Source of the DNA: Macrostomum lignano
Taxonomy: Eukaryota
DNA length: 45,701 nucleotides
Direction: 5' to 3'
NCBI GenBank assembly: GCA_002269645.1
Contig: NIVC01000354.1
Span: 1-45,701, forward strand
Part shown: positions 263-26,781 of the stretch, in pieces
How positions within the stretch are numbered: position 1 is the first letter of the stretch
How the letters are laid out: every line of letters starts with the position of its first letter
Translations under genes and position numbers: made by a program
Notes under the pieces: generated by a model
What the model was told of the DNA's origin: nothing
Seen by the model: only the letters and a program-made list of their open reading frames with translations
Database searches by the model: none

Positions 263-342
263 ACATTCGTATAAACTTATAATTCTTATAACAATAAACT
301 TTGTGATTTTTTAAGCAAATGAAGGCTCGTTTATTACAAATG

Positions 343-3500: not shown

Positions 3501-3750
3501 TTAGAAACAAAACAAACAGAAGACAAAAAGGCAGCAGTATCCAAGGTGTGTGTGTGTGCGCGCAAAACTTTGATAAAGTGCAAAAAGGTGGACTGTAGAA
3601 AGATACTCAGCTGACGGGCCATGCACCCAGAGAGATTCCGCAATTTAAGACAACGCGGAAATGAGGAAAAACGCAATTAACAGTTGCGGGACGGCAAGTT
3701 TCGCTAATTTTAACAAAAAATTCTATTGCTGTGAACATCAATTGGCAGGC

Positions 3751-5117
3751 TCAGGCCAGGCTCTGATGCAGCGCCAGCAGCGCGTTCAGCTCCGTCTCCG
3801 GCAGGTGGGCCCGCTTAGCGGCGAATTCCGCCAAGCCGAGCGGCGACTGAGCGTGCAGGCAGCAGGCCGGGATGTGCAGCAGCAGCCGCGCCTCGCCAGA
3901 CAGCGTCGGCAGGCGATCGGCCGACGACGACCACCACTGAGCCGCCGAGCCGGAAGCTCCGGCCTGTTCGAGCAGCGACTCGTATCGTCTGGCCTCGTCT
4001 TCTACAGACTTGCGCGCCTGATCCAGATTCTGCTGCACCACCAGCGAGTTCCGCTTCCGCCGGCTGATGTGGCCGGCCTCTTCGGCCAGCTGCTTCTCCA
4101 CCAGCTGGGCGACGGCCGACTTCCGGTCCGTCTCGGCCGGGAGCGGCAGCCGCGGCTGCAGGAAGGCGGCCAGCTGGGCGAGACGCCACACCTTGTCCGG
4201 GCTGCGGTAGGCCGCCAGCACCCGCTCCCGGCTGCCTCAGCCAGCGCCTCCACAGCGGGATCCACCGCGGCGTCGGCGTGCGAGGAGGGCGACGCCGTCG
4301 AGGACGTCGCCGGTTGGCGCAACACGGCGGGCAGGTCGCGCACCACCGGCAGAGCCTGGCCGAGGCTGCCAGACGAGGCGGAGAAAAGCCGGCCAAGGTG
4401 GTCGCGGAACCGGACAAGGGCGGCCGCCAACTCGCGGGCCGAGCGAAGCTCCGGATCGGTGCAGCCAGACGGCGGCGGTGGCGGCGATTGCGGCTTCGTC
4501 ACGGAGGTGTCGTCCACGAGACGCTGCAGGGCGTCCAGCGCCGACTCCCAGCCGGATTCGTCATCGAAGTCCTCTTCCTCCTGATCTTGATCCTCCTCTT
4601 CGTTGACGTCCTGAGCCGCTTCGACGTCGCCGTCGGCGTCCATGGCGCAGTCGGTGGCGACGGTGCCGACAGCAGCGTCGTTGCCTTCGCCGTCTGTCGC
4701 GGTTGGCGCCTCCTGATCATCTAGCAGGTCGTTACAGTTGACGTCCGCCTTCTTCGGACGGCGGGCATCATCGTCTTTCGCTAGGCGACGATTGGCGCGA
4801 AGGATCTGACGACGTCCATAGTGACCGCGGCGACGACTGCAGCGGCGGCTGCGGCAGCGGCGGAGGATCGCCTGGCAGGCCGGCGTCTCAGCCAGGGCGT
4901 CGCTGACAGCCTGCGACATGGCGGCGTGCAGACAGGGCACAATGATGATCTTGTCGATGGAGTCGTGCATCCCGTTCTGGTTGGCCTGTTGCAGTTGGCG
5001 GACAAAGTCGGCCGGTCGGTTGCAGACGATGGGCAGAAAGTCCTGCGGCAGCTGCGACTCGGTGTAAGCCGAGATGATCTCCAGGCAGGTGGATGCCAGC
5101 AGGTTTAGGTTGGGCAG
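3751..5117 (-). CDS. ZBED-like gene, last exon: hAT core C-half plus C-terminal dimerisation domain (frameshift at ~4229-4232)
   Basis: Acceptor tcacccctctcaccaccag|CTG at 5118/5117 (alternative cttgcag|TAC at 5159, same frame). Motifs: IVCNRPADF (hAT VTD-x-G/A-A-N), VPCLHAAMSQAV (CxxH region), SGWESALDALQRL (TRWNS-x3-ML-x-R), LAAFLQPR (ATxLDPR), QWWSSSADRLPTLSGEARLLLHIPA (WW-x5-FPxLxxxARxxLxIPA), HLPETELNALLAL. TGA at 3751-3753. Confidence 0.82.
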
Positions 5118-8100
5118 CTGGTGGTGAGAGGGGTGATAAATCATCATTTGAAGTCGGTACTGCAAGCGTGATTCTGGGGACTTTAGAGAGCTTATTGTGT
5201 CTTTGACACCTTCCAGTGTCGCTTTGGGGGTTCTTGGTGTGTCTCTGGTGTCCTCTTGGTGTGTCTCTGGTGCCCCTTGGTGTTTCTCTGGTGCCCCTTG
5301 GTGTTTCTCTGGTGTCCTCTTGGTGTGTCTCTGGTGTCCTCTTGGTGTGTCTCTGGTGCCCCTTGGTGTTTCTCTGGTGCCCCTTGGTGTTTCTCTGGTG
5401 TCCTCTTGGCGTGCCTCTGGTGTCCTCTTGGTGTGTCTCTGGTGCCCCTTGGTGTTTCTCTGGTGTCCCCTTGGTGTTTCTCTGGTGTCCCCTTGGTGTG
5501 TCTGGTGCCCCTTGGTGTTTCTCTGGTGCCCCTTGGTGTGTCTGGTGCCCCTTGGTGTTTCTCTGGTGTCCTCTTGGTGTGTCTCTGGTGCCCCTTGGTG
5601 TTTCTCTGGTGTACCCTTGGTGTGTCTCTGGTGCCCCTTGGTGTTTCTCTGGTGTACCCTTGGTGTGTCTCTGGTGCCCCTTGGTGTTTCTCTGGTGTCC
5701 CCTTGGTGTTTCTCTGGTGTCCTCTTGGTGTGTCTCTGGTGTCCTCTTGGTGTGTCTCTGGTGCCCTTGGTGTTTCTCTGGTGTCCTCTTGGCGTGCCTC
5801 TGGTGTCCTCTTGGTGTGTCTCTGGTGCCCCTTGGTGTTTCTCTGGTGTCCCCTTGGTGTTTCTCTGGTGTCCCCTTGGTGTGTCTGGTGCCCCTTGGTG
5901 TTTCTCTGGTGCCCCTTGGTGTGTCTGGTGCCCCTTGGTGTTTCTCTGGTGTCCTCTTGGTGTGTCTCTGGTGCCCCTTGGTGTTTCTCTGGTGTACCCT
6001 TGGTGTGTCTCTGGTGCCCCTTGGTGTTTCTCTGGTGTACCCTTGGTGTGTCTCTGGTGCCCCTTGGTGTTTCTCTGGTGTCCCCTTGGTGTTTCTCTGG
6101 TGTCCTCTTGGCGTGCCTCTGGTGTCCTCTTTGTGTGTCTCTGGTGTCCTCTTGGTGTGTCTCTGGTGTCCTCTTGGTGTGTCTCTGGTGCCCCTTGGTG
6201 TTTCTCTGGTGTCCTCTTGGTGTGTCTCTGGTGCCCCTTGGTGTTTCTCTGGTGCCCCTTGGTGTTTCTCTGGTGTCCTCTTGGTGTGTCTCTGGTGTCC
6301 TCTTGGTGTGTCTCTGGTGCCCCTTGGTGTTTCTCTGGTGCCCCTTGGTGTTTCTCTGGTGTCCTCTTGGCGTGCCTCTGGTGTCCTCTTGGTGTGTCTC
6401 TGGTGCCCCTTGGTGTTTCTCTGGTGTCCCCTTGGTGTTTCTCTGGTGTCCCCTTGGTGTGTCTGGTGCCCCTTGGTGTTTCTCTGGTGCCCTTGGTGTG
6501 TCTGGTGCCCCTTGGTGTTTCTCTGGTGTCCTCTTGGTGTGTCTCTGGTGCCCCTTGGTGTTTCTCTGGTGTACCCTTGGTGTGTCTCTGGTGCCCCTTG
6601 GTGTTTCTCTGGTGTACCCTTGGTGTGTCTCTGGTGCCCCTTGGTGTTTCTCTGGTGTCCCCTTGGTGTTTCTCTGGTGTCCTCTTGGTGTGTCTCTGGT
6701 GTCCTCTTGGTGTGTCTCTGGTGCCCCTTGGTGTTTCTCTGGTGTCCTCTTGGCGTGCCTCTGGTGTCCTCTTGGTGTCTGTTGGCAATTCTAATTTCGA
6801 CTAGTTTTAATCCTCAAGTCAATAACATTCTGTCACTGCATATCATAACGATTTCACGCAATTATACTCGTAAGCAGACGAATTGCATCAGTAGATAAGG
6901 TGAGAACAACAATCCCTCCGCACGCTTGACTTGTTTTCCTCCTCTCGTTCAGCACCAGCTACGAAAAAGAAGTCGGACCCAGCGATGCGATATGCGAGCT
7001 AAGGAGGCCTTCCTTCCTTCTATGAAGCTTCCTCTCTCCATCTCCATAGTTGTCAAGGCGACTTGCCGCAATTCTCCGTTTCGTGTTCGCATTGTGCGTG
7101 TGCTCCCCTCCTTCCCACCCCCAGCATGCCATTGCAGCAGATGCTTCATCAAAGCAAAGCTGAGGCTCCCCTGGCGACAGAGTGGCGATCGCGAGCCCCG
7201 CGGCCAAGCAGATTCAACAATAGGCTGCTTATAATCGGCAGCAGAAAAAGGCGCGACGCCAAGGGAGGTGGTGGGCGGGAGATGCGGGCTGGCGGCAGCT
7301 CATCAGCTAAGCGTGCCGTGACTTAACAACCGCCATGGGGTGTCGGCTTGAGGCCAGATTTGAGGCCTCGCGGTCGCAGCGAAGAAGGCAAAGAATAACA
7401 AGGGGACACGGAGAGGAAGTTGGCCCCCTATAGCTCCTCTTACCCGGCCAATTGAACAGTGAGAAGCGTTCCCGCGCTGCGAAGATCGAGTAGAGGATTA
7501 TGAGATCCCTTATAGGCATCCCTGGGACAGAGGGAGAATAGCGGGGGGTGGCGGGCTCCATTGTTCGGAGCGGAACTCGGGCTCATTGTCACAGCCTCTC
7601 CGACTTGAAAAGACGTCCGTGCAAGTCTTTCCTGTCTGGCTTGATGGCTCGGCTGGGAGGGAGGCCGACAAGCTTCTTCCATCACCGAGCTCAGGATCTC
7701 TCTTTGCCCGCAGCCTCATCTCCCAGCATCCTCTTTATTCTCAAAGCCCGGCGATTTACCCTCCGCGCGTTTGTCAGCCTGGAGCCTTCAAACTCCCCGG
7801 TCTTCCCTCTCTTAGCTCAGCTCAATTTCAGACTGAGCTGACGGGAGACTCATCAATTTTAAGTTTCTTTTTTTCATAAAAAATTCGGCCCACACCTTTT
7901 CAAAATGCCAGATCGACTTTGCGGCTGCCGTTCCCGTCTTGATTGGTTCAGAAAATTTCTCTCCAGGCTAGGTTAAATAGATGGATTCAAATCTGAATCT
8001 GACATTCTTTGTGGATCCTAGACTGGTGGACAATAGCGGACAGGCTCGACAAGACAGACCTAAGACACAGACACTAAGACATACGAAGACACAGACACTA

Positions 8101-11100
8101 AGACAGACGGAAGACACAGACACTAAGACAGACCTAAGACACAGACACTAAGACAGACGAAGACACAGACACTAAGACAGACAAAGACACAGACACTAAG
8201 ACAGACGAAGACACAGACACTAAGACAGACAAAGACACAGACACTAAGACAGACGAAGACACAGACACTAAGACAGACAAAGACACAGACACTAAGACAG
8301 ACAAAGACACAGACACTAAGACAGACAAAGACACAGACACTAAGACAGACCTAAGACACAGACACTAAGACAGACGGAAGACACAGACACTAAGACAGAC
8401 AAAGACACAGACACTAAGACAGACAAAGACACAGACACAAAGACAGACAAAGACACAGACACCAAGACAGACCTAAGACACAGACACTAAGACAGATGAA
8501 GATACAGACACAAGGACAGACGAAGACACAGACACTAAGACAGACGGAAGACACAGACACTAAGACAGACGAAGACACAGACACTAAGACAGATGAAGAC
8601 ACAGACACTAAGACAGACGGAAGACACAGACACTAAGACAGACGAAGACACAGACACTAAGACATACGAAGACACAGACACTAAGACAGACGAACCCAGA
8701 CACTAAGACAGACGAAGACACAGACACTAAGACATACGAAGACACAGACACTAAGACAGACGAACCCAGACACTAAGACAGACAAAGACACAGACACTAA
8801 GACAGATGAAGATACAGACACAAAGACAGACGAAGACACAGACACTAAGACAGACCTAAGACACAAACACTAAGACAGATGAAGATACAGACACAAAGAC
8901 AGACGAAGACACAGACACTAAGACAGACCTAAGACACAGACACTAAGACAGATGAAGATACAGACACAAGGACAGACGAAGACACAGACACTAAGACAGA
9001 CGGAAGACACAGACACTAAGACAGACGAAGACACAGACACTAAGACAGATGAAGACACAGACACTAAGACAGACGGAAGACACAGACACTAAGACAGACG
9101 AAGACACAGACACTAAGACATACGAAGACACAGACACTAAGACAGACGAACCCAGACACTAAGACAGACGAAGACACAGACACTAAGACATACGAAGACA
9201 CAGACACTAAGACAGACGAACCAGACACTAAGACAGACAAAGACACAGACACTAAGACAGATGAAGATACAGACACAAAGACAGATGAAGATACAGACAC
9301 AAAGACAGACGAAGACACAGACACTAAGACAGACCTAAGACACAGACACTAAGACAGATGATGATACAGACACAAATACAGACGAAGACACAGACACTAA
9401 GACAGACCTAAGACACAGACACTAAGACAGATGAAGATACAGACACAAAGACAGACGAAGACACAGACACTAAGACAGACGGAAGACACAGACACTAAGA
9501 CAGACGAAGACACAGACACTAAGGACAGACGAAGACACAGACACTAAGACAGACGAAGACACAGACACTAAGGACAGACGAAGACACAGACACTAAGACA
9601 GACGAAGGCACAGACACTAAGACAGACGAAGACACATACATAAAGAAAGACGCCAAGCACAGGCTATGTAAAGGGCCATTGGGGTGTTCTCGTATCTTGA
9701 GTAGCAAATCAAGCAGCACAATTAAGACACTCACCGGTCGGGTCTCCAGAACGCGACATTTAGAAGACGATGACAGAGTCTGCTGTAGCTGCTGCTGTGC
9801 CGGAGTGCTGTCTTGCGGGACAAACGCTCTGAGCGTTAGCAGCCTGGTGCCGGCATGATTGCGCCACACCTCGGCTGAGAAGGCACGCACTCCGGGGGCG
9901 CCGCCGATTAGAGCGGCTTTCACCGCGGCCTGCTCGGAGGTCAGGGCGGCCGGTAGCAACTGTTCGAGTAGCCGTTCGCGCTTCGGCGGCTCGCACCTGG
10001 GCGCCAAGCTCTGCACCAGGCGCTGCAAATGTGCCACAGCGGGGGGTCGTAAGGTGGGTTAGGAGCAGAAGTCGAAAAAAAAGAATAATAATGCCCTCCC
10101 CCCTGAGCAGGCAGTGTGAATAATGCAAAAGCTGACGCAAAAGCAGAAGAGAGAAGACAGAAGAGAGAATGGGCCAGTACCAGCAGGAACTGCTGTACAA
10201 ACACCGCGCCACTCGCGAATGACGCCGAACGAAAAAAAAAATTTTTTAGAGGCCGGAGGGGTTGCGGCGGAGACTTCGGTCGGAGCCATTGTTGGTGCCG
10301 CTAACAGGAAGCGACTTCCTCTTCTAAAGCCCACTCGCTCAATCACTCTCACCGTCTCTCTGTCTCTCTGTGTTGTCTCCTTCTCCCCCTATTACAGCCG
10401 GGAAAAAATTGCAACAAAAACTACCCAGCAGACAGGGGCCCGCCTATTCTAGCGTAGGAAACTGCCCAAACTGATCGAAGAGTGGCTAAGCCGGCGCTCT
10501 CAAGTGAGGCGCCGCTGGTCGTCAGCAACCCGAAGCTTTGGGTGGCGTGGCGGGCGCCGCTGAAGTGTGTGAGCGGGACCTGCAGCAGCAGCTGATATCC
10601 AGCGCAGCCTAGCGAGCTGCTCGTGTGCTCATTCCATTACTTGCCTCTCCCTGTCAGGGACCGGGAATTCCCGTTCTCCTGCTGCCCACCGTTTTGTGAC
10701 ACAATTATCGGGCCCTCCTATGCCAACACTCGAAAGTCATTGTTCCCCGCCCCTCCAGCGATCTGGCTGAGTGAATGTGAGAGAGAGGGGAGGACGGGAA
10801 CTCGATTCCCCGACCTGAAAACCGTCCTCTTTCCCGTTCCCCTCAACCTCAAACCAACCCCCCGGCATTGTTCGCCTCGGTCCCGCGGGGTGACAGGCTG
10901 AGCAATAAGAGGATTCTGTCCCCATTGTTACCAACGGAGCCGATTTCCGGAGCAGCAGGACCCGAAGAGGGCCACCCGAGAAGAAGCTCGGTTGCGGTGG
11001 AGTGGGGCGGCTGAATGATTACCTGAACAAACAGTGCGGGCCCCGGCCCATTCACGCAGAAGACAGCGCGCTCAGCCGCGGCGCTCGCAAGGGCTTCCTG

Positions 11101-14100
11101 TCCCCCTTCAGGCCCTCCAGGCCCAGGGAGCGGGACATTCCGGCGCCCTCTGCAGCCCCCCTCCACCCTCGGAGCTCCCAAATAGCCCAGACCTCCACCT
11201 GGAGTCGATCTCTGCTCTGTGCCCCCTCTCTTTTTCACTGTGCTGCTGCTGTTCATTGTTCTCCACTCAGCCTTCGCTCTCCCCTTCCCCCGCTCCACAC
11301 GAGAACGCCCCCCCCCCGCTACCTCGTGTTCTATTTTTTATGCCATTCTCAAACAATGGGATTCGAGTCAGCGAGTTTCGATGAATTGATGATGACCGAC
11401 CGTGAGGCGGAGAGGCAGGGAGGGTAGTCAAGCCGGGGAAAGGGAAGACCGCGGGGAGCAGCGAGGCATGGATAAAAAAGCTCTCCGAATTCCAGATCCC
11501 GCCGGGACCTGGAGGGTGCCAGCTTTTTCACCACCATGCTGGCTCGCTCTTAACCCCCCCCCCACTCTCTCTTTCTCATCAGGCCAGAGCCTCTTCTAGA
11601 AATCGATTTCTTTCCGCTCGTTCCCGCCGCCGCGTGCCCCTCATCGTCAGCCTCCCCCACAGGTGTCAGCCTCAGCAGCGCGAAGGCAAAATCAGCCGCC
11701 GGCGACCCCCAGCAGCGGCGGTGGTGGCAGCAGCGGCGGAGGCAGCAGCAGATGCCTCAAGTCACTGCCAACCCTTCGCAGAGCTCCTCCCATCCCCCGC
11801 GGTGAGCCGCCAGCTACCTCAACCCCAGCCTCAAAATACAATAGACCCCGTCCCCCTGGCGAGTGCATTGTTTCGCTCGAGTCTCAAGCTCCCCCGGGGG
11901 GGCTCAACCAGTGTTGCTGCTGCTGCTGCGAGCGAATGAGTGAAGCTTCTGGGCCGGGCCTGTCCCCCCTCTCTTCTCACTCGTCGCATTCCTCTACCCT
12001 CCCCCATAACAATTTCTAATCCCATTTCAGGCAGTTGCCGTGCTCACCCCACACAGCATCACCTCCCCATCAAGCGTCACCCGGGCCACCCCCTCCAGCG
12101 TCTCGAACCCTTCGGCTTGGCCAGGCCCAGCTGCCTGCTACAGAAGAGGTGAAAGCCAAATCGATAATGCAGTCCCTCAGTCCTCATTTCCAGCTGCTTC
12201 TCCTTCCACACCCCAGTCGCTTTCTGCTCTCGCTTACTAACACACAAAGTGAAAACTGCTTGCCACCTTGCAAACAAACACTTTCTATCAAGCTCATTCA
12301 GCTTCCTTCCCCGCGGCGGCTGCGGTGAACTCGGCCCCGAGCAGCAACTTCCTATGCGAGTAGACTCAAGCTCCCAAATTGGAATTTGGAGGGAGGGGGG
12401 GGCAACTCATCATCGCCTACCAGCCTCGACTCCGCATGCCTGGGCAGGCGAGCAGAGCAATAGAAAGAAATGGAAAGAGAGGCGCGCCGATTGCGCACTT
12501 GAATCTAAGCGGATCAGCTTTCATTGAACTGCTCTATATAAGAGGAATTGGGGCGCTCAAAATCTTTGTTTGAAAGCTTGCAAACTGCGGTGTTGGGGAG
12601 ATGACGAATACAGAGAGACAGGATGACAACAACACAAAAAATGTGGGAATTCTCCCCCGATCCGAGCGCCTCCTCCTCTTTTACCTCCAACGAGGCTGGC
12701 TTTGCGGGAAATCGGGGGGGGGGGAATAAATGCGGCTTTTGAGTCGGATGGGTAAATCGATATCATCACCTCGGGCAGCCCCCCCCGTCACCCACCCTGC
12801 CGCCTGTCTCCCAAGTGTGCAGAGAGGCTGACTAGGCTGCTTCTCAAGTTGGCGAAACGAAATAGACTACTTTTTTGCATCGCTCCTGCGCCCATTGTTC
12901 TGGCGCCAAGTTTTTTTGATCGCGACAGCAAGCAAGAAATTCGGGTCCGACTCACACAAAGCTGTCGAACCAAAAACGCTGTGGAGGATTGATAATCCCG
13001 GCCTATGGAGCTCTTTGAGAGTCATCTTCCCTTTTTGATGGGGGAAGACCACACAAGTTTTTTTCGGTCCAGGGTGCAGCGTCAACAACAGCCGCCCCTT
13101 CGTGTGTCAGGCGCTTTTTTTGGATGCACAGAGCGGGCGGCCATTGTTAATTGGATCTGCGGTGCTCAAGTTTCATCATTAGAGTTGGGGAACTCAATTG
13201 GACTCGACGAACAAGATATCCCAATGCCAGCTCCCGCAACCACCTTGACACTGCCGAAGTTGGCCGGCGCCTACATAGACTGTTATATACCTCGATTGCT
13301 CGACAGGTATGAATGATACTGGGACAGTTTTGGGATGGAGAAGGAAGCCATTAAAAGGCAGTTCTCCCGAATTGCGAGCAGCGACGATAATGGGGGGAGG
13401 GAGGGAGGGAAGGAGGGAGTCACACGCTGCGGGACCCGCAACGACGGGGCTGAGGGAGGAAGGCCTGGCTTATTCTGCCGCATCTTCTGTGCCGAAAGCA
13501 GCTCGTGGGAACTGCAGCAGCATAGAGTTTCTTTGTTCTTTACACCCACTTCCACCTTTTCCATCGCTCCCTCCTCCATCTGTTTCTCTACTCCCACTTC
13601 CCCCTCGAGCGCCCCCAACCCCTTGCGATTCGAGGCAGAATGCAGCAGAGCGGGTACAGGGAGGGAATGCGCCTACCAGAGCTCTTCCGCCTGCTCACCG
13701 CGTCTCAAACGCTCTTATTCCTTAGACTTCCTCCCCCCTATTCTTTCCCTAACAACGCGCGAGAATGCGAGCCGCTCCTCGGTATTCAGCAGTTAGATCT
13801 GCAGACTCCACGCTTTGTTCCATCCTTCCCAAAAATTTTTTATAGGACAACCGCCTCATCCTCCGCGAGGATCTGCGGGCGGTTCTATTATCCTGCCACA
13901 GCTAATCTAAACACAAAAACCCGATCTCGCGGCCTGAAGTTTGTCTGCTACATACCAGCAGGTGCGAGACGCGCTGTATAGATCTTCGCGAAGTTAACAA
14001 GCAGGCGCATATAGGGAGGCAGGGCAGGCAGTGAAGCGAACGAGCTCCGCACGAGAGAGAGGCATTGAGGAGCGGAGCAATGATCCCAATTTATGGCGAT

Positions 14101-17100
14101 CCAGACGCGCTCGAGCTATGCGGGGGGACTGAGTCGGGCGGCGGAACTCGTCTTGCCGTTGAGGAGAATTCAGGAGAGGCTTTTATTATTATGTTCCTCC
14201 ATCTTCTAGAGCATCATCTCCCCCCATGCTCACCGCCCCGCACTGTTAAAGACATGTTTAATGCTGCGGGCCCCCGACAATGGTCCGGCCGGGGCTCAAA
14301 TAAAACCGCAGCTGCAGAGCCTGACAGCGTCGCTGCAGAACTACGCTCGCCCCTGGCCACTCGCATCATCTCAAAGGCTATAGCGCAATTCATTGCTTCG
14401 CAGTCCATTGAGCCTCCATCAGCGGCTTGTATTGAAACTCGTATTCTGCGCTGCAAGACAACTAGCCAAATCCCACCCCGTCAATAAATTCTCCCCTCAC
14501 CCCCAGGTAGCCGCAACTTTTCTAAACTCCTCGTCCAGCAGCAGCAACAACAGCAGCAGAAGCAGCAGCAAAGTTGCAAAGCTTTTGTTCTGGAGGCCCT
14601 CCCGCCAGTAGTTCGCCTCTCTCTGCAGCCCCCCAACCCCCGCGGCTCCGGCGTTTGGACATTTTTCCAAAGGCTTTTCACAGCAATGCACGAGAGAGAG
14701 AGGGTATTCAGCTGGTTGAGGGTCGAGTCGGGCCCAGCAGGGAGCATTCCCAAATTCTCCCCAGTCCAAACCTCCCGCCTCCTGTTGCAGACACAGTTTT
14801 TGGGAAAGAGAGGCAGAGGCGGCAAGCGCAAGCTGTATCTGCCTGCCGCAACAACAACACAATACGAGGCGGACGACCCCCCCTCTATTCTGCCATGCTT
14901 CAACTTTAGTCCCTCTCCAACTTCTCTCTTTCTCTACTGGGTCCGGGGGCCACTCGCGAACTCCGGGTCCGGGGCCGCATGAATAATTGAGCAGTAATTC
15001 TATTTCTCCCTAATTATCTCTACCTGTAGGTCTGCTGCCATCACACAATGCCCTGGGCCGCGGGGAACAATGGCAGGGGGGCCGACTCTTCTAACCCCGC
15101 AAGTCCCCCATTCCACTCCGGAGAGCCTCATCATCGGCGCCCGAGTCCGCGCGCGAGCCTCTTTTACCCTGGGATCCGAGCTTTACGAGCCCCTCTCCTG
15201 CCCTCAGCGCTTCCCACTCTTCAACTCATTCATTCCCCTCCCTCATCTCTCGTGTCTCCCAACCCCCCCCCCCCCCCAAGTTTTACGGGCCTGCAGCGCA
15301 GCACGGGAGTTTTAACTCCGCGCCGGACTCTGCCGCCCTCATCATACCGGGGAATCGCGGCGGCGGCAGCAGGCAGCTCCACCTCCACCTCCGCCTCCGC
15401 CCGCGCGGGGGTCGCGCCCGTCACTTCATCATCCCGGGGAGAGCGGCGGCAGCCATCGGACCCGCACGCCATTGTATGCCGGAATGCCGCATCCAAAAGC
15501 GGAGGGGGGGAAGGGGACGCACGGCCGACCAGGTGGGAAGCGAGGCCCGGCATTCCGGCAGCAGGTTTTTTCAAACTTCTTTATCCCTCAAGCTGCTTGC
15601 CTAAACCACCAAAAACTCATCACTCGCAGGCTCAAACCGCCCCCCCCCACCCACCAGACACTCTTGAACCCGCGCGGCCAGCTTCTTAGACAGAGACAGA
15701 GAGCGGGAAGAATCGCTCGGGCTCGAGAAAGCCGACCACCCGCCCTTTGCCGGCCTTCGCGGCCAAGCCCAGCATCCCATTGTCAGCCTCATCCAACTGC
15801 TCACCGTCACGCAACGCTGCATAGCTCATATACCATCGCTCTCGCTAGCAGCTGTTTAGCCAGTCAGTCTATTATGCCCCAGACGAAACCAACTCGAGAG
15901 TGAGACGGAGGCAGCTCAAGCAGAAACGCGTCAGAAACAAAAAAGCCGCAATATGCGAAATAACCAACTCTCCCGCCCAACCCGCAGAAAATGCCCCCGC
16001 ATTCATCCCCATCCTCTTTCGCCCCCTGAAAACAATTGAATTCATAGCCAGCCGCCGCCAGGACACAAACTCCCAGAGCCGGCACACGCGAGACCCAGGG
16101 CCAACTCAAACTGAATGCTTGAATTGCGGCAACAAGTTTGCATGTAGCAAGTGGACCGCCCGTGCTCCACTTGTTGGGCGTGTGTCTCTCTCAACTGCGT
16201 TTTTTTTGTTTTCTCGCAGCCCTCGGCCTCGCAACACCTGACTCGCGATTTTGCCCAGCCAGACCCCCGCCCCTGCCGCCGCCAAGATGCAGAGTTTTGG
16301 GAGGCTGCATAGCAAAACTCCGGGGACAAAGTGACCAATATATAATTGTGTTGCAGTGTGCCACGCTTGGATGCAGGAAAACAAGCTTGAAGGATAGGAA
16401 ATACCCTCTTCTCCGCTTTGTCCCTCGCTGCCTCGCGCGCGTTTCGCCTCTCTTCTCCCCACCTCACTGTCTTCTAGAGGCCGCCTGAAGGACCTGCTGC
16501 TGCTAGTCTCTTGCGCTTTCAACACTCCCTATTGTTCCTTCGTAAGCCTCGGTCGACCTCAAGCCTTCCTTCGCCAAGCCCCGGCAAATTTTGAAGACGA
16601 ACAACTATGCTCTCGTCGCCAGAGAGAAATGTGTTGCTGAGTCCAAGAGGCCAAACTTCTCAGCTTTGAGAGTCGATTCATAATAAAAATCGGTTTCAAT
16701 TGTCGAGCTTTTCTCTATTCGCTTTCCCAATATTTGCTGGGGAGAAATATTGCTTTTTTTCTCTCTAGCGGCGGCGGGGAGTGGGAGGCACGTCGCGCCC
16801 TCAATTTCCGAGTCACCTGAGTCGAAATTTCCCAGAACCCCTTTCCCCCGGTGTTCTCAGTCACACACAGGCCAAGCCTCGCAGATGGGATTAGAAAAGA
16901 AGACGGGACTGGAAGAGAGAAATTGCCAGCCGACCCCGAGCCCCGAATTTCCGAGATTTTCCTAGAATAATGCCGCGCGCCGCCCCTCGTCACGGCCTCC
17001 CCCAGCGGGTGTAGGCAATATTTGACTGCCGCAGCCACCCCGACCCTCTCCCGAGCCGGCAGGCAGACAGACCGACGACGACTTTCACAAAGCGTCTGCC

Positions 17101-17806
17101 AAAGCCCAGAACAGGATGGATGGAGAAAAGAAAAGAAGTTTCGGATCAAGGATAGATTGGCGGAGGAGCACCGGAGATCCGAGGTCGAGCGGCGGAGAGA
17201 GAGAGACTCGTGCCCGGTTTTCGGGCAGGCCCGCGAGGGCTCCGGCGAACAGTTGATTTTTATTAAAAAGCCAACGGGGACGAAAGCAGAGGCAAACACA
17301 ATTGCCAGGAACCGAGGGATGAGACGGGCCTCAAGGTGCGGCTGAATAAGGAGAAGAAGAAGAATGGGAGGCTTGGGCAGCCGGCGAACGATTCTCGAAT
17401 GCAACAATGCCTCCCCCTCCCCCAATGCAGCCAAGCCGGCCAACCAAAGAAAACCGATGCTTCGCCCATGCACAGTTTGTGTGAGACCCAGAGTTTGGCC
17501 AGAGGTAACCCGAGCCCGCCCTGGATGGCTAAAGGCCCATAACTCGATTAGAATACTCGGCAGGAGGGTCCGCCAGGCCGGCTCTAACCACCGATCGCCT
17601 TCAGCGCATTCACTTTGCTCTCCTACCTTCCTTTCCCCCTCCCTCTCTCTTCATCCCGTTTCCTCAAGTAGCTCACCTCCCAAACATTCATTCAGAAGCG
17701 CTTGGAATGCGATCGGGCCGGGCCCAGGCGGTTTCGCGAGTAGCCCGGGCCTGAAATCCGAGTCCTAGCCTCTCTTTTGTACTCGCATCAAATACCCAAT
17801 TAAAGG

Positions 17807-17867
<61 letters not shown>

Positions 17868-20800
17868 AAGAGAAAAAACTTGGTGGAAAAAGGTAAGAAG
17901 CGCGGGTCAGGCTGGGAGAGATGATGATGGAGGAGAGCAAAGCGCCTGCTGAATGCTGAAATCCGCGACTTTTCGCGCGAGCCAGCGAGCACCACCCCAG
18001 CCTCCCGCTCCGCCACTTCTTCTGTTCTCCTGTGCCAATTCTCTACTGCCCGCGGCTTGACGTCCCATTTCCTGCAGACTGGGGCAGGGGGGCGGCTCGG
18101 ACCTGAGCCCGGCTGGAGGCAAAAAAGACACACTGGGCGACTGTCGGGAAGGTCGTCTCGGTTCTCACCTCACCTCTTGGCTCCCCTTCCGTTCCCCTGT
18201 CCACCCAATTTCCCTGGGACCCCAAGGTTCGCTTCGATCCGAGCGGCTGATGAGTGATGACGCCTTCCCCATCGGCCAGCCTCCCCTGCTCACTTCTCCC
18301 ACTAAGCCCCTTCGCGCCGACTTTCTTTTAAATTCAAACAAAACTTCAGCAGAGAAAAAACCGGCCAAGTTTCTGGATTGTGGGATCGGAAGACGGCTGT
18401 GACCAAATCCATTCCACCTTCTCAACGCCTCTGCCTCTTTCTCTCCCCTCTCCATCAGAAAGTCGATAAGGCAACAATGCCGCTATATAGGGCAAAGCAA
18501 TATGTCCTTTGAGCAGGCTTGTCCGAGGTGAATGAGCAGTGAGTAGAGATGAGGCCGGGCTGTTTTGAATTTTCGGTAGCAAGATGCCAGCCTTGATGCG
18601 AAGGAAGCCCAGACTGGGCGAGCATTTTTGACACAGACACACACATTCAGGGGCCGCACACACCAAGTCTTCCTTTCCAGGAATCTAGATCCTTTGTTTC
18701 CCTAAGGCTAGAAGCAGCACCCGCACGAGGCGGCCTTCCCCAATACCCTCCCCGCCAGGCTTCCCGATGCCAGGCCAAGCAAGGCAGCAGAATCCCAAGG
18801 CAAAGCTTCAAGGCAAACCCACCTTTTTCTCACTCGGGCCTGCTTCTGCTGCTGCTGCTGCAACTGCGCGCCGCGCTCGAGTTTCCGCAAAGCAAACAAT
18901 GGGGGGTGGGAGGGGAGAAATAGAAGGAGCTGCGGTGAGGGAGAACACAAACCGCCCCGCTCCATTCGATTGAACAACAGAGCCAGTGTTTTGTGAGATA
19001 TCGGAACGGACCCATGGCTGGCTGACAGACCCATTGTGTACACGGGCTGCGGACAGCTCACCGTGTCTGAAACACCTTCCTTCGTTCACAGGGCTGGCTC
19101 ACACCTTCGAGTTTGTCCCCGTTCTCGCTCCCTCCATCTGTGCTAAATTTACAATGTTTGACAAGCTTTATAAATGTGACGAAGAAAGAGAAACTGGGGG
19201 AACTAAGGAAGCATATTATACAGGAGGGATGGCGCTGTGTTGTTTGGGCTATTGCTTCTAGAAGCATTCTTTCTGCTTTCTCTAAACCCAGCCCCCGCCT
19301 CAGTTGTGTGCGGAATCGTGGAAAGCAAGGAAGGAGCAGATATGGCCGCCGTATGCCCGAGCGATAAATGGGAGGGGAATTGCAGAGCTGAGCTCATGAC
19401 GGTGCGGGCCTGTGGAGAAGCCATTAATCTGACAAATATGAGCCTCCGAGCTCGGCCTCCCCTCCACCTACTCCCCTCAGCCAGGCCTCCATTGTTTGCG
19501 ACCTAATCTAGTAGCATAGGCCTGCAGGCCGGCGTGTTCGAGCTGGGGAGCGCCTATCTGGTAGGGGAGATAGACAGTGGGACGGGATCTTAAGTTTAAT
19601 GCGAATTCCCAGCAGCCCCACAATGCAGCTGCTGCTGCTGCTGCTGCTGCTGCTACAGCTGGAATGGAACTGATTCTGCCGCGAGTCCCGCCCGCATTGT
19701 ATCGAAACTTTTCAACAGCGCCAGTTATATAGTCACATGGAGGCTCCGTTTTATACCGGGCCTTCGCTCTCTCTCTCTCTTATTAAACCCGACCGGCTTC
19801 TACTATCCAGAACTTCCCCCTTCTTCACTTAAGAATTCCTCGTTCCTATTACCGGCATCGAGGCCCCGGGGAGAGGAGTTGGGGAGGGGGAACAAGGCGA
19901 AGCGAAGTTCTTGGCCCCTCTCTGAGAGCGAGAGTGAGTTTAGAGCTAAAATAGAGAATGGATGGACACGAGTTTTCGGCTAAGGAGGAAGGAAGCTACA
20001 CCAGGGCGCCACCCCATCACACCTGGGCTGACCAGCCGCCGTGTGAAGAATAATGGCTGGGGGAAGCTGAGAGAGAGCAGAGAGTAGAACGACAGACAGT
20101 CGCGCGTCGTATCCGTCTGGTCTGTCCTGGGCCCCGTCCGTCACAGCCTCGGGAGCAAGGAGGTTTCAGTGATCAAGGGATTTTCAAGTGGGATTAGAGC
20201 AGAGGGACCAAGATGGCTGGTAGCAACATACTCGTTGGTTCAAGCAGCTGAAGCTCGCGAAAACAGAATGAACTGCATAGGGGAATAGAAATCCATTGTT
20301 GGAGCGCATGCACTGCGCACACAATGCCATTAACGGTGCGGGTCGTCTGTCCGAGTTACGGGGAGGGGGTTGGTGCGGCACCCTGCTGGTTGAATAAACC
20401 CAGGTGGGCAAAAATCCCATTTTCTCGATTCCCCTTTTAAAACCCCTTCCAGCCCCGGCCGTATATGGATTTATTCCCCCCCGTCCGGACTGGGGTGCTC
20501 ACTGCTCAACCGACTAACCTCCCGAAAAACTGACGATTCGCTCGCTAGCTCCACGAAAAAAAGTCGCGGACCAGAGTCCGAAACGAAGCCCAAAAGCGGC
20601 GACAAGCGGCAGACGCCCGCTTTTTCCTCTTCTGCAGGAATATATATATAGCTTTTTTGCCTGCGATTTTGTATGCGCGGGTAAAGGGGGAGCAAAAAGG
20701 CAAAGCCTAAGCCCAGTCATCCCAGGTAGGCGGCTGACTGACTGCGCGGAACTCTCGGCAATAAAGCTGTTCAGCTCTGCCCGCAGCTCCGAAGCCTCCT

Positions 20801-20965
20801 GGCTGGCGGCACCGAGCAGCCGGGGGGGGGGGGGGGGCCGCCGACATTCGAGGACCACTCGTGAGCCCCACAATCTTGCCCCAGCCAACAGCCCACTCCC
20901 CCCCAAACTACCAATTCCCAAGTCTGCAGCAGTCTGCCTAGGCAGCAAAGAAGCCTGAAAACCAG

Positions 20966-21002
<37 letters not shown>

Positions 21003-21192
21003 TCGCTCGATCGGCAAGCGAGCAGCAGGCTGCTGTTTCACTTGCCTGGCGGCAGCGGCTGCGGGCGCAAGCCAGCGAGCGAGTCGAGTCTTGCAGATCC
21101 CCCTCCCTCCGACTCCGCCAACCCCCACCGATTCGTGGGTGCAGCATTGTTTGCAAAGTGGCCAGTTGTGGCAGCAGATTTCGCGAGCTCGC

Positions 21193-21232
<40 letters not shown>

Positions 21233-24200
21233 GACTCACACGGGGAAAACGAGAAACGGCTGCTTCCCCAGTCCTTGCTCCCGTGTGCTGAAAAAAACAG
21301 CTCCCTACTTGCGATCCCCGGAGCTCGCAGAGGACGAGCTCAGAAAGCCGGAGAATAATTTGGTGCCCCTCTCCGATCCCGGCTCTGCCCCATAACCTTT
21401 TTCCCTACAAAACCCTCTACACTTAAGCCTCTGAAACTATACCATTCCGCAATACTGACGGGGACACCCTGTTGATTAAGACCCCGCTTCAGCTGTCTGT
21501 GTGTCTCTGAGCTCCACACCGGGCGCCATATTGCGGGAATCGAATTTTTATCCCCCGACAGCGCTCTCAAAGCCGCACTCGCCACTGCTGTTCCACTTCG
21601 TTCCGCTCCCGCAACAGGAAACCGCGGGAAGGAACGAGAGAGAGAGAGAAGAGAAATCTCAAACTCGCCAAAAACAATCGCGCAAAAGTATGCTCTCCAA
21701 AATAAGATTGAAAATCTCAAATAATATTATTAACTTTTGAAGTTAATTCACAGTGGTATAGATCGATTTTCAAAACTCGAACAGTTTTTGACAGCGCTGG
21801 TCAAGCTGGATAGGAGAAGCTACTGAAAACTGACAGACCGTCAGTACTTGAGCCACCCCAGCGCACACACACGCACCCTTCGTATCTAAAAAACGGCTTG
21901 AACAGTATTCAGCAGGACTCCGCTCCCTCTTCATAACTTCTGCCCCCCCCCCGATCCGAGCTGGAGCCGAGCGAGCAGAGCTGAGCTAAGCGAGCTTTAG
22001 CTAACCCTCGAATTGTTCGGCTCCCCGCGGCAGCAACGTGACGAGAGAGACGACAGGCAAGAAAGAAAGCAAGAGCGAATAAAATGAGAAGGGAAATGAG
22101 AGGAACCAGCTGTGAAAGGCTCGGGCAAAAAATGAATAGGGAAGCTCGACAAGGCCGAAAGAGTTGCAGACAGTTTAAGAAAGGTAAGGAGGGAGTGAGA
22201 ATGTGAATGAGTCAGTTAGAGCTGACCTGAAGTGCTGCAGTGGGGACTGGGGGAGCCACTTTCATCTGGCCGAAATTTCGAATTTTAGAAGAATCGAAGG
22301 AAGGGATCATAAACCGAATTGGCGTCGCAACCAGCTCAATGATAAATAAGGCTTGATGAACATTGGCGAAAAGAATGGAAAGAGAAAAAAACAAATGCTG
22401 TGTTTGGAGAAAAGTTAAGGAGTTATTGGGAAAGGAACCAGAACCTCTGGAGGAGATCATCAAGCGACATCAGACGAGGAAGGTAGCCATGGCAAATGTC
22501 TGTATTCAAGGAGAAATAGAAGGTGAAAAGAAAAAGAGGAAGACCGAAAAGGCAGTGGGCGGGAAGATGACCTGAAGCCGTGAAGGAATGGACCGGATGG
22601 ACAATGGAGAGGCTGGTAATGGTAAAGAAGAAGAACTATCTTGAGCAAAGCAATTTCTAGACCAAGAAGCGCAGCTCACCAAGAAGCCAGGCTGATACAG
22701 GGTGTCCGTTGGCAGCAGGTCTCTGGCCAGGAAGTGCACGAACTTCTCAGCCCCGATCGGATTGTCGCGGCACTGACCAGCCGCTGGTGTAGGCGACTCG
22801 CCCGGCTGGCCAGTCGCCGTGTGCGGAGCCGCCGCCGCCGCCGCCGCCGTCGGGCCGCCTCCGGTCTTGCGCAACGGTGCCGGCGCCTTCCGCTTGGCCC
22901 GCTTCGGGTCCGGCGGGCCGCTGACTCCGACGCCACCGTTGCCCGCCGACAGGCTGGCGCTACCGCCGATGCCTGAGGTGGCTGAATTATTATTAGCTGT
23001 GGGATTATTAACAGCTGGATCGGCGCTAGAATAGTCGTCTCCAAAGTTAGTAGGCGACTGGTGCTTGGCGGGCCGGTAGACTCCCTTGGCCAGCGCCATT
23101 GTGGGGTACATCTGCGCCAGAGCGTTCGAGTACAGCACATCCTGCAGGGTTAGGTGGCTGCCGCCCAGCGGCGGGAAGGTGCCAGGAAAGCAGTGGCTGG
23201 GCAGGAACAGTGCGGAGAAGTCCTGAACAGCGGCTGTTGTTGCCGGCGGGGCTGCCGCCGCTGCCGCGTGCCACTGCATCGCCTGCGCTGGCACCTGCTG
23301 TTGCTGCTGCTGCTGCTGCTGCTGTTGCTGTTGCTGCTGCTGAAGCTGCTGGAGCTGCTGTTGCTGTTGCAGCTGCTGCTGAAGAACGGACTGAAAAGAT
23401 GGAAAAGACGGCATGTTGACAATGTATAGGTATGAAATATTCATAAGCACCATACTGAATTATTCCAAATTCCAAACGGCAAAGCATTTTGCTGCATAAA
23501 TTGTTTTCGAACTCGATGGGAAATCGCGAGTGTTGCCTGAGCTGTGGAGTCTGCTTGAGGAAGCGATTCGCTCTGAGCTAATCGAGCGAGCAATATTATT
23601 ATAATCTAAACTTCAGCGGGAGGATTTGCTTAGCCTCCCGCTTACCTATTTGTTTTCCTTTCCCTCTTTTTCCCATTTTATCCCATCGCTTATTTCTGCC
23701 AGGCCGCTTTATAATGATTCCGCATATTGTCCTCCCAGACCCTAACCAGATCCTGTGTGGGCTCGGCTCAAGGAAAACTCGCTGGAGTCGCCTCCATCGT
23801 CTCTCCCGCTCCCACAAGTCCCCCCGCAGGCTTTTAGAAGCGAAAAAAGCGAACTCCGGAGGTTTAGGAGGCCGGGCCGGCCCGCATTTTTGCTCGAATC
23901 CCAATTCCCAGTCACATCCCGCCTGTTTGCGCACCCCCGCGTCTTCGTCGTCCCGTGCTCGACCCCTCAGTTTCTCTAAGCCCTATTTACGCATGCCACA
24001 CGCCCTCCTCCTCGATAGCTCATCGGGATCGTTGAAAGTCTTCCCTCTTAAAGCCGGGGCCCTTCATTCTAAAAACCGCACACAGCAGATCCTCCCTCAC
24101 GTCATCGTTTTATAAGTTTTTATTTCGCCTCTCCTCAAATCGCTTTCTCACCGTTGCACTCACGGAGCAGACAGTTTTTTTCGTGTTCATCCCAGACAAT

Positions 24201-26781
24201 TGAGCCAGGCGAAGGGGAGGTCGTGACAAGAACAGGCGGGTTATAAAATGAAAACAATTCGAATTGGGGGGGGGGGTGGGCGGCTTTGTTGTTCGAAACG
24301 AATAAAAGCTGTCTGTGTATCGAGGCTTTGAGTCTCCAATCGGTCTCGAGTGGGCCTCGAGTAGTGGGAGAGAACTGGTTTAGCAGAGCAGGCAGGGGCT
24401 GGCAACAGGTGATGCTCGAATGTTACTTTCTCACTGCCTGCGGTCTGGGACTGGGAGAGCGACTGGGATGGAAACAGCTGGTCTGGCTCCGTCTTTTCTA
24501 TCACTAATTTCTGATCTTAGTCTGTCGAATAAATTTTTTAACTTAGCAACACGAAAAACTACAAAGTTCTGTATCCATGAATTTAGCGATTGCAGTTTGA
24601 AATTCTAATTGATGGAGTTGCACAATGGACAAGAGAGAAAGAGAGACTGACTCAGGGACTGAAGTGTGAATGAAATAATGTAGTACTAGTTAGAAGGGTA
24701 ATTCATTGATGAAAAATGACTTGCAGCACCTTATTTGAGGGGGTTGAAGTGTGCGTGCTGCAGCATCAATGCAATGCGACTGTATTAGGTCACTTAGCGG
24801 CACAAACTTACTCATACTGATTTCTGATCAGCGCCAGACCCAAAGCGGAGCCTCTATTTGGCGCCAGGGCTGCAGGCCTAATCTAGAAGCGGGTCTCATC
24901 CGCGCAGAGGAGGGGCCATTGGAACAGGGGGAATGAGCTGTGAGCGAGCGCCGCGGCCCCACCGGGGCTCTTCAAGCGGGCTCTTCGACTTCCGGGTCGC
25001 GGACCAGAAACGAGGCTCCGCTTCCAGGAGAAGGCAATTGGGGAGTGGAACAGAAAAGCGATCCAATGCAGCAGCGCAGCTTGCGGTCGAGGGGGGGAGG
25101 GCGGCCGAAGCGAGCATACCAAGGGGGCAGGGGTGCTTTTTTGACGGGATGAAGTTGCGGCGCAGACGAGGAGAGAATAGGTATTGTGCACCGCACACAA
25201 CTGAAGAGAAGGAGCAGGGGACAGAGGCCAATTCATCAATGTTGCTTTGGAACCAAGGCTTAACAATGGCCGACTTCGCTGGCTATAAAAAAACTTTTTG
25301 AGGGCAGAACCGGGGGTCCTGAGCACCGCACAGCTCGCACTTGCTCCGGGGCTTGGTTGCGTTTTGAGTAGATGAAAAAACACCTCCCCTCCCAATACCA
25401 CTTTAAACACCGGAGGAGTTTTCGAAAAAAAGTCGGGGCGCTCAATTCATTGTGCGCGCGTGAACCGGGCTTAGGGCGGCCGCCCCCGGGGGGCCCGCAG
25501 CCTCAAGTGGAGAGCCGGGCCTTCCTGCTAGTTGCCACCAACCCCAAGGCCCCCCGGGGAGTTGACAGAGGTGGGAGAAATTGGACTCTGATGATGATTA
25601 TGGGAAGACCTTGGTAAGGCCGTGAGAGGACTCGACAGATTGATCCCCAACGCTAAACTCCTCTTTCTTCCCGGCGCACAAAACTCAACTCAATCCAAGT
25701 CCCATTGCACGCCTTTCAGCTCATGGTCCGAAAAAAGTAGCAAAAGAGTAGAAAAAAATCTGGTGGAAGAAGCGCGAAAAAGTGAAAGGCCCAGAGGGAG
25801 TCGCACGAGGAAGGGCATTCAATAAAGGGGGAGAAGAGGAGAGATGCAGGCGGAGGAAGGAGATGATGGGGGACTGCATGGGGAGGCTGGCTAGTTTCCT
25901 TCGGGAGCGGAAATTCCGAAAATTGCGGGCCCCTGCAGGTCGGTCCACCAGAACGAATGGGGAGCGTTCCTTACCTTGTCGATAGCGTGCCCAATGGAGC
26001 CTCCGTGCTGCGGTAGACCGGACGCGCGACCGCCGCCGCCGCCCCTGACTGCGCCGCCGTCAGCATTGCCGCCAGTGCCGAATTCCGTAGCGCACTTCAC
26101 AGAGGGCACCTGCTGCATCTGGTCCGGCTTCACCGCCACCGTCAATGGCAAGGGATATTGCTGCGGAGGCTGCTGCTGCTGCTGCGGCTGCTGCTGAGTC
26201 TGCTGCGAATTCGGAGTCGACTTTCCGCCGGAAACACTGCTAGTCTTCTGCTGCTGTTGCTTGCCAGCCGACGCTGCGGAAGCTGGCGACGCCTGGTCGG
26301 CGGATGCCGGCTTGCCCGACTTCTCCTTGACAACCGGCGCGGGGCCGTTGCCACGGCCGCGTTTCTGCTCCTCCTCCTGCCGGGCCACGTCGCCGTGACG
26401 ACTCTTCAGGTGGTTCAACATCGTGGTGGTCGTGCCCGAGTTGTTGAAGGCTAAGACAGCGTTGCAGATGCTGCAGACCGTCTTCTTCACGTCCTGAATG
26501 CCGCTCGACTCGTCTATCGGGTGGGTGAAGTAGCGCCACACGAAGGACTTCTTGGCTTGCGACTTAACGTGTTGCTGCTGCTGCTGCTGCGGAGCCTGAG
26601 TCTGCGGCGTCTGCGGCTGCTGCGGCGACGCCGAGCCCGTCAGCACCGCCGCAACGGACGACACGGCGTCGGACGTTGGACTGTCAGGGCCAGTGGCGTC
26701 GCTGGCTCCGCCGATGCTCGGACTGCCGACCATTGAGCCTACGGCGGCGGCGCTGCTGCTCAGTACAAGTGGCTCGGACAT
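3751..26781 (-). CDS. Spliced gene model: BED-finger, hAT-transposase-derived (ZBED/DREF-like) protein, ~1,057 aa; join complement(25975..26781, 22680..23390, 9735..10022, 3751..5117)
   Basis: Coding exons of 807, 711, 288 and 1367(+1) nt, joined by GT-AG introns that are all phase 0. hAT motifs continue across the junctions: ...LARDLLPTDTLYQPGFL|RLVQSLAPRCEPPKRERL... and ...KCRVLETRP|LPNLNLLASTCLEII... Motif order is BED, D-x2-P-x6-GF dimerisation motif, RNaseH-like core, W-x-S motif, L-x-P-R motif, C-terminal WW/P-x-L dimerisation domain. Needs one base restored near 4230. Confidence 0.8.
5233..6781. repeat. Composite 21/22-bp minisatellite of GGTG(Y)n subunits (GGTGCCCCTT / GGTGTTTCTCT / GGTGTCCTCTT / GGTGTGTCTCT), ~1.55 kb, in intron 3 of the ZBED-like gene
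   Basis: Tandem array read directly. The plus strand is almost A-free, so stop codons are absent and spurious 500+ aa ORFs appear. Confidence 0.97.
8051..9635. repeat. 24-bp minisatellite (GAAGACACAGACACTAAGACAGAC)n, about 66 copies, in intron 3
   Basis: Tandem array; the 8-aa periodicity of overlapping ORFs (VSVSLSVL) confirms the 24-bp unit. Confidence 0.97.
9735..10022 (-). CDS. ZBED-like gene, exon 3: N-part of the hAT RNaseH-like core
   Basis: Acceptor tttgcag|CGC preceded by a ctaac branch-like motif; donor CCG|gtgagt; 288 nt, phase 0-0. RLVQSLAPRCEPPKRERLLEQLLP...FSAEVWRNHAGTRLLTLRAF matches the hAT pattern L-x-P-x-Y-x2-PSR-x2-L...T-x-D-x-W-T...YL-x-VTAHF. Confidence 0.82.
17809..17864. 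repeat. (GA)28 microsatellite
   Basis: Perfect dinucleotide run. Confidence 0.95.
19628..19654. repeat. (GCT)9 microsatellite
   Basis: Perfect trinucleotide run in intron 2. Confidence 0.9.
20968..20997. repeat. (CT)15 microsatellite
   Basis: Perfect dinucleotide run. Confidence 0.93.
21196..21229. repeat. (CA)17 microsatellite
   Basis: Perfect dinucleotide run. Confidence 0.93.
22680..23390 (-). CDS. ZBED-like gene, exon 2: polyQ / Ala-Pro-Gly-rich linker, basic NLS-like motif, start of the hAT N-terminal dimerisation motif
   Basis: Acceptor ccatcttttcag|TCC; donor TTG|gtgagc; 711 nt, phase 0-0. Pure Q16 run at 23295-23342; PDPKRAKRKAP; ends AEKFVHFLARDLLPTDTLYQPGFL (hAT I-x2-D-x2-P-x3-V-x3-GF). 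Confidence 0.8.
25975..26781 (-). CDS. ZBED-like gene, first coding exon containing the BED zinc finger
   Basis: First in-frame ATG at 26781 (the ORF track starts at an upstream TTG). BED signature SFVWRYF...C-x2-C-x17-H-x4-H (CSIC...NHLKSRH) at 26395-26547. Donor AAG|gtaagg at 25975/25974, phase 0. Confidence 0.88.

Follow-up and report, generated by a model that had tools for sequence, protein, structure and literature searches.

A host gene of hAT transposase origin, spread over four exons, in the flatworm Macrostomum lignano

Do the scattered minus-strand reading frames in a 45,701-nt stretch of the Macrostomum lignano genome (contig NIVC01000354.1) belong to one host gene derived from a hAT transposase, or are they the remains of a mobile element? 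The whole stretch is called the window below, and all positions are window positions. An earlier note, made from the letters of the window, had proposed a hidden, four-exon gene of ZBED/DREF type on the minus strand. Our analysis makes it probable that the locus belongs to an old gene family of flatworms, which goes back to the capture of a hAT (Ac/Hermes-type) transposase by its host. The gene had been present in GenBank solely as a 3' fragment, and its first full-length model is presented here.

Four coding exons are distributed across 23 kb of the minus strand (Table 1). All three junctions (J1 to J3) are of the GT..AG type and in phase 0, and the lengths of exons 1 to 3 are all divisible by 3. 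The exon structure and splice sites of the earlier proposal therefore stand, as do the motifs said to be split at the junctions (GF/RL and ETRP/LP). The start codon is supported by the N-terminal sequence MSEPLVL, which resembles the MMEPQVL of fluke N-termini; further on, exon 1 encodes a linker rich in Q, S and G. At J1, the donor AAG/GTAAGG (25975/25974) matches eight of nine consensus positions and ranks first among 12 candidate donors, and the pyrimidine tract of the acceptor scores 14/15. J2 is supported because the hAT core runs uninterrupted across the junction in every relative and in Hermes, and because a phase-0 intron occupies the same site, after EGEGFK, in the relative from Clonorchis sinensis, which is likewise spread over 23 kb (EGEGFK/gtaagt...tag/SMIGFL compared with PGFL/gtgagc...cag/RLVQSL in M. 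lignano). Exon 3 is identical to the GenBank copy named g3. J3 is present in both GenBank proteins of the species, PAA64400.1 and PAA54641.1, and is supported by its use in PAA64400.1, which comes from an annotation based on RNA-seq; J1 and J2 lie outside that annotation. A Clonorchis exon boundary after DSIK corresponds to ETRP at J3 in a hand alignment guided by the strand positions of the structure model, and the automatic alignment puts this boundary elsewhere.

How hidden was the gene? The closest database match of the joined model is PAA64400.1, deposited as 'hypothetical protein BOX15_Mlig000368g3, partial' (543 aa), and the 3' half is thus already represented by this entry and by PAA54641.1, likewise a partial hypothetical protein. 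It is therefore not wholly hidden. That GenBank annotates the product of exons 3 and 4 alone, and that no protein in the databases extends over J1 or J2, could also be read as a sign of two genes, one for a BED-finger protein (exons 1 and 2) and one for a hAT-core protein lacking the finger (exons 3 and 4). However, the two Mlig_3_7 contigs that carry the deposited copies, L001 and L002, both end within intron 2, at ~17396 and ~16176 and about 1.2 kb apart, so that exons 1 and 2 could not have been joined there and the deposited proteins are 5'-partial. Exon 3 opens at a good acceptor and not with an ATG of its own. From its beginning in exon 2 the hAT core continues uninterrupted over J2, as it does in Hermes and in every relative, and Clonorchis joins both parts over an intron at the same position. 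Two separate genes are therefore highly unlikely. Two further database entries, UniRef100 A0A1I8HX66 and A0A1I8G2A0 (P0014 and P0015), are fragments of 243-245 aa of the M. lignano protein. Their labels, 'DEAD_2 domain-containing' and 'Rho-GAP domain-containing', do not fit the sequences and were disregarded; P0014 begins in the wrong frame, a sign that the older assembly may contain a frameshift.

The predicted length of ~1,057 aa does not follow from the window as written. Exon 4 is no multiple of 3 there, a flaw that the earlier note had overlooked, and three-frame translation shows a switch of frame near 4230. At this point the window reads GGG where copy g3 (on L001) has GGGG, and the second copy, g4 (on L002), is likewise one base longer. 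With one G restored, the joined frame encodes exactly 1,057 aa; both GenBank copies carry that extra base, and exon 4 is otherwise identical to g3. L001 (GCA_002269645.1) aligns to window positions 1-17396 with 99.6% identity, 17 mismatches and 46 gap openings, so that the window represents another sequence version or allele of the PAA64400.1 locus. Since exons 3 and 4 otherwise equal g3, and since the differences between the window and L001 are mostly indels, the missing base is most likely an indel of the assembly and less likely an allele. We flag it as such in the window copy; it is no evidence of a dead gene. A 20-nt GT..AG 'mini-intron' at 4203-4222, which would also restore the frame, was rejected, because it is far too short and would remove residues found in the GenBank proteins.

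What kind of protein is encoded? Near the N-terminus lies a BED zinc finger, detected by the Pfam zf-BED model with 29.8 bits (cut-off 20.6). Its zinc ligands C103, C106, H124 and H129 are invariant in the alignment of flatworm relatives. It is the best-conserved part of the protein: 35 of the 45 invariant columns of the flatworm alignment fall in the finger region at aa 77-136, and the fingers of Macrostomum and of the fluke and tapeworm relatives are 57-67% identical. A profile built from ten flatworm proteins matches the Hermes transposase with an E-value of 8.5e-9, whereby profile positions 787-1252 (466 positions) lie on chain residues 17-483 and the core region of exon 2 aligns to the start of the Hermes chain. 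The same profile aligns through the Hermes C-terminus, where WW...YP.L...IP is conserved, and several flatworm relatives carry PF05699. In the AlphaFold model of the core, alternating strands and helices are followed by an all-helical region and then by C-terminal helices; a Foldseek search of the Protein Data Bank with this low-confidence model gave significant matches to nine Hermes chains only (E 1e-5 to 1e-3). Taken together, the profile and domain matches make the hAT transposase origin of the gene solid, and the proposed combination of BED finger and RNase H-like core, with an intact finger and a Hermes-like fold, is borne out. An Rfam scan of the window gave no match.

The sequence alignment places Glu, Asn and Gln at the positions of Hermes D180, D248 and E572, the first within the motif SAEVW. 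By this comparison the catalytic triad is lost, as had been supposed. The flatworm relatives agree: the first position is E or K, the second is N and the third is mostly a residue other than Glu, with the hidden Markov model alignment leaving Glu in three relatives (P0022, P0024 and P0005).

The relatives are also informative on whether the gene belongs to the host. Proteins that share the domain order of the M. lignano protein and measure 1,100-1,800 aa are found in Mesocestoides, Opisthorchis, Clonorchis, Paragonimus, Dicrocoelium, Calicophoron, Echinostoma, Heterobilharzia and Schistosoma, where they have been deposited as unnamed BED-type proteins. The M. lignano protein is colinear with these fluke and tapeworm proteins over the N-terminal motif, the BED finger, the basic motif (KRAKRK in exon 2, KRKR or KRKRxRP in the relatives), the GF motif, the core and the C-terminus. 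A profile search of 1.84 billion representative proteins returned only 25 at E<=1e-30, which marks the family as a small one. Those of the 25 that were identified are from flatworms, except for a Rhodnius-type DREF, ZBED1-named proteins of Aphidius and Argopecten and one unnamed sequence at the weak end of the set; under it follows a continuum of ordinary hATs. A profile search restricted to the BED finger (alignment A3) yielded no scored matches, probably owing to a word-index limit, and is uninformative on distribution. In the flukes, two groups of paralogues were observed (P0009, P0011, P0012, P0017 and P0021; P0004, P0016, P0020 and P0022), one with Glu and the other with Lys at the first catalytic position. 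Both have Asn at the second, which implies a duplication inside the parasitic lineage after the triad had been lost.

M. lignano itself has at least two copies, g3 and g4, which are ~96-97% identical, introns included, and have the same downstream Peptidase_C97 gene beside them. The gene is thus not single copy in this species; since the identity spans the introns and the neighbour is shared, the copies are duplicated blocks and not transpositions. This fits the M. lignano assembly, which is known to be redundant owing to extra chromosomes, the genome being partly duplicated (PMC5730564). A comparison of exons 3 and 4 between g3 and g4 shows 13 nonsynonymous and 17 synonymous changes and one in-frame indel of 3 nt, giving a ratio of nonsynonymous to synonymous substitution rates (dN/dS) of 0.27 (p 4e-4), the pattern left by purifying selection. 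Terminal inverted repeats were not found above chance: the longest inverted match between the flanks measures 13 nt, compared with 10-13 nt in shuffled controls.

Could the locus nevertheless be a decaying, non-functional hAT copy with intron-like insertions? The frameshift in the window removes the C-terminal domain, the catalytic residues are gone and the 'introns' are full of tandem repeats, as such a pseudogene would have it. However, the frameshift is missing from both GenBank copies, and apart from it the reading frame stays open for 3.2 kb, its four pieces bounded by consensus splice sites. RNA-seq-based annotation exists for the 3' half, and the intron position in common with Clonorchis, the dN/dS value, the identity of the BED fingers to those of flukes and tapeworms and the missing inverted repeats all argue against decay. 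This explanation is largely refuted and extremely improbable. Domestication as a host gene is well supported, in line with the old, host-recruited factor that had been envisaged. In the literature that could be searched, nothing was found on Smp_157860, on Mlig000368, on a flatworm ZBED or on a domesticated flatworm hAT.

Several points weigh against this host-gene interpretation and the model behind it. No full-length transcript or protein of M. lignano covering exons 1 and 2 was found in the protein database, and J1, which lies within low-complexity sequence and is backed by splice-site quality alone, is only a prediction. In the window as written the joined frame ends at codon 974 (4002-4004), and the C-terminal domain is lost to another frame. 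For the M. lignano protein taken alone, Pfam Dimer_Tnp_hAT gives 14.9 bits (E 0.023), under the cut-off of 21.4, so that the proposed dimerisation domain is the part of the architecture that a single-sequence search leaves below threshold. Confidence in the structure model is low, with a mean predicted local distance difference test score (pLDDT) of 56 and template modelling scores (TM-scores) to Hermes of 0.32-0.41. The dN/dS estimate draws on 30 substitutions and on exons 3 and 4 only. Among the identified matches there was no planarian relative and only one from a tapeworm. Finally, DNA binding, oligomerisation and nuclear localisation are attributed to the protein by analogy with its relatives.

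With the capture of a hAT transposase as the preferred explanation, a mode of action can be proposed. In order, the protein comprises a short conserved N-terminus, the BED finger, the Q/S/G-rich linker with the basic motif, the core with its three exchanges (D to E, D to N, E to Q), an acidic insert, the all-helical region and the hAT C-terminal region. Such a protein would have lost DNA cleavage and probably acts as a nuclear, self-associating, sequence-specific DNA-binding factor in transcription or chromatin. The BED finger would read DNA, and the selected function would centre on it, since the invariant columns accumulate in the finger region. The dead transposase body and the C-terminal region would serve as the oligomerisation scaffold. 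KRAKRK, which resembles a nuclear localisation signal, probably drives nuclear import, and effector functions may reside in the poly-Q and acidic stretches. In this way the protein would resemble DREF and ZBED1 in its mode of action.

Domesticated hATs have been recruited repeatedly as DNA-binding regulators, as DREF, the ZBEDs and DAYSLEEPER illustrate. The kind of gene is thus well known, but the flatworm lineage is undescribed. The family is older than the split of Macrostomum from the parasitic flukes and tapeworms, and keeps its BED finger almost invariant. Members are known from major human parasites (Schistosoma, Clonorchis, Opisthorchis and Paragonimus). A flatworm-restricted DNA-binding factor could also interest parasitologists. 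As M. lignano is ready for transgenesis and amenable to RNA interference, the function of the gene is directly testable.

Table 1. Coordinates of the hAT-derived gene and of further features in the window
Feature	Position	Strand	Remarks
Coding exon 1	25975..26781	-	269 aa; ATG 26779-26781
BED zinc finger	26395..26553	-	aa 77-129; KKSFVWRYF...C..C...LAFNNSGTTTTMLNHLKSRH; Pfam zf-BED
Intron 1	23391..25974	-	2,584 nt; GT..AG, phase 0, predicted; J1 at 25975/23390
Coding exon 2	22680..23390	-	237 aa; poly-Q run, low-complexity linker, KRAKRK, start of hAT core (EKFVHFLARDLLPTDTLYQPGFL)
Intron 2	10023..22679	-	12,657 nt; phase 0, immediately after GFL; J2 at 22680/10022
Coding exon 3	9735..10022	-	96 aa; first strands of RNase H-like core; motif SAEVW
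Position of Hermes D180	9870-9872	-	Glu, codon GAG, exon 3
Intron 3	5118..9734	-	4,617 nt; phase 0, after ETRP; J3 at 9735/5117
Coding exon 4	3751..5117	-	1,367 nt in window, 1,368 nt in both GenBank copies; stop TGA 3751-3753; remaining core, acidic low-complexity insert, all-helical region, hAT C-terminal domain
Position of Hermes D248	5019-5021	-	Asn, exon 4
G-run short by one base	4227..4229	-	by comparison with both GenBank copies
hAT C-terminal (dimerisation-type) region	3754..3999	-	...RRYESLL...QWW...LPTL...LLLHIPA...
Position of Hermes E572	3847-3849	-	Gln, exon 4
Tandem array	5233-6778		intron 3; 22-nt unit, 72 copies
Tandem array	8051-9652		intron 3; 24-nt unit, 66 copies
Inward-rectifier potassium channel ORF	31923-33071	-	uninterrupted, 382 aa
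Retrotransposon pol remnant	33993-36135	+	within a patch of 64% GC
Symporter-like ORF tail	~42150-42420	-	probably last exon of a transporter gene
Further tandem arrays	1-514, 37844-38250, 41939-45701		units of 9-31 nt

Two tandem arrays of 1.5-1.6 kb occupy two-thirds of intron 3, near both of its splice sites, and their stop-free frames give rise to spurious open reading frames (ORFs) of 500-930 aa on both strands. Two long ORFs, at 4002-6788 and 5197-6898, were rejected as artefacts of the 22-nt array. The further short-unit arrays in the window are consistent with the very repeat-rich genome of M. lignano; the GenBank annotation was derived from a genome-guided RNA-seq assembly from which transcripts overlapping repeats had been excluded (PMC5730564).

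The upstream neighbour of the BED-hAT gene is an inward-rectifier potassium channel ORF, which is matched by the Pfam models IRK (194.5 bits) and IRK_C (227.8 bits). It is followed by the remnant of a retrotransposon pol gene in two ORFs. In the first lie the last part of the reverse transcriptase, RNase H and the zinc-binding domain of the integrase, in the second the integrase core and C-terminal domains. The two overlap at 35239-35282 in different frames, which indicates a frameshift; upstream, the greater part of the reverse transcriptase is absent. Beside a 12-nt tandem array lies an ORF tail that scores 25.1 bits with Pfam SNF, just under the cut-off of 27, over profile positions 470-522 of 524. 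It would encode the last transmembrane segment of a member of the sodium:neurotransmitter symporter family.

Is the flatworm gene, then, a DREF or a ZBED? The earlier note had called it ZBED/DREF-like, and in architecture this is justified. A closer relationship would follow if an early bilaterian domestication had led to insect DREF, to the 'ZBED1-like' proteins of echinoderms and molluscs and to a fast-evolving flatworm branch. The best non-flatworm match of the flatworm core profile is indeed Rhodnius DREF (143.8 bits), followed by 'ZBED1' proteins of Aphidius and Frankliniella that carry the BED signature of Rhodnius DREF; the margin is small, however, as intact transposases reach 134.1 bits. 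Glu stands in place of the first catalytic Asp in insect DREFs, in sea-urchin ZBED1 (XP_011674868), in a ZBED1-named protein of a sea cucumber, in a mussel protein, in a lamprey protein and in flatworm proteins, and the BED fingers have WKYF..P...C.LC..QLA[FY]N in common. In a neighbour-joining tree of 111 core sequences, the flatworm clade falls within a group of 25 members that holds all insect DREF-type proteins. This grouping has a bootstrap value of 0.035, the flatworm clade one of 0.23 and its placement values of 0.04-0.35, and long-branch attraction is likely among fast-evolving dead transposases; the tree was therefore not relied on. Nor is the match reciprocal: with a DREF profile, transposases with an intact Asp-Asp-Glu (DDE) triad score 300-530 bits, and the flatworm proteins 13-152 bits, at ranks 136-193 of 193. 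The intron of Rhodnius DREF appears, from a reading of the alignment, before the F of GRG/F, a few bases off the flatworm site; in the ZBED1 gene of the sea urchin no intron is present there. We regard a flatworm orthologue of DREF as unlikely, and a single, bilaterian-wide domestication marked by the common change from D to E, with the flatworm gene as its fast-evolving DREF, as somewhat less likely still. If it were true, DREF would be an ancient animal transcription factor, and the flatworm gene might control stem-cell proliferation genes as DREF does in flies. These comparisons do not establish orthology with DREF or the vertebrate ZBEDs, and we treat the flatworm family as DREF-like in design and as no shown member of either family.

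The comparison with known systems makes this position clearer. DREF (DNA replication-related element factor), known from Drosophila and other insects, binds DRE (TATCGATA) and controls proliferation genes. Like the flatworm proteins, insect DREF combines a single N-terminal BED finger, a dead hAT core and a C-terminal domain in a multi-exon host gene, has exchanged the first catalytic Asp for Glu and has lost the glutamate of SERxFS. In contrast, the flatworm proteins exceed it in length by a factor of about 1.5-2.5 and have a long low-complexity linker, their BED signature reads SGTTTTMLNHLKSRH instead of NTSNLRMHLQNKH, and their second catalytic position is Asn, where insect DREF-type proteins have Ser, Ala, Thr or Phe. 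The two are not reciprocally closest, and their intron positions differ.

Vertebrate ZBED1 (hDREF/TRAMP) and the other Ac-derived ZBEDs are likewise domesticated hATs of the Ac type that serve as BED-finger DNA-binding regulators. Going by the title of a 2007 paper by Yamashita et al. (cited in PMC7471704), the nuclear accumulation and DNA binding of hDREF reportedly depend on self-association mediated by the hATC domain. The vertebrate ZBEDs are reported to keep the DDE triad and to have originated in jawed vertebrates, with ZBED1 not close to DREF (PMC3606216). The flatworm family lacks the triad, its members come from flatworms only, and the comparisons made here revealed no phylogenetic link to the vertebrate genes.

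With Hermes of Musca domestica, which serves as structural reference for active hATs, the flatworm family shares domain order and fold, the profile covering about residues 17-483 of the 517-residue construct. Hermes is encoded by a compact mobile element and has D180, D248 and E572, terminal inverted repeats and 8-bp target duplications. The M. lignano gene has E, N and Q at these positions and lacks inverted repeats; its introns add up to 20 kb, and its relatives are fixed in other species. DAYSLEEPER of Arabidopsis and other lineage-specific domesticated hATs show the same combination of BED finger and hAT body with a degenerate catalytic site, and DAYSLEEPER is an essential DNA-binding factor. 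It was recruited independently, in the plant lineage, and the parallel with the flatworm family implies no common ancestry.

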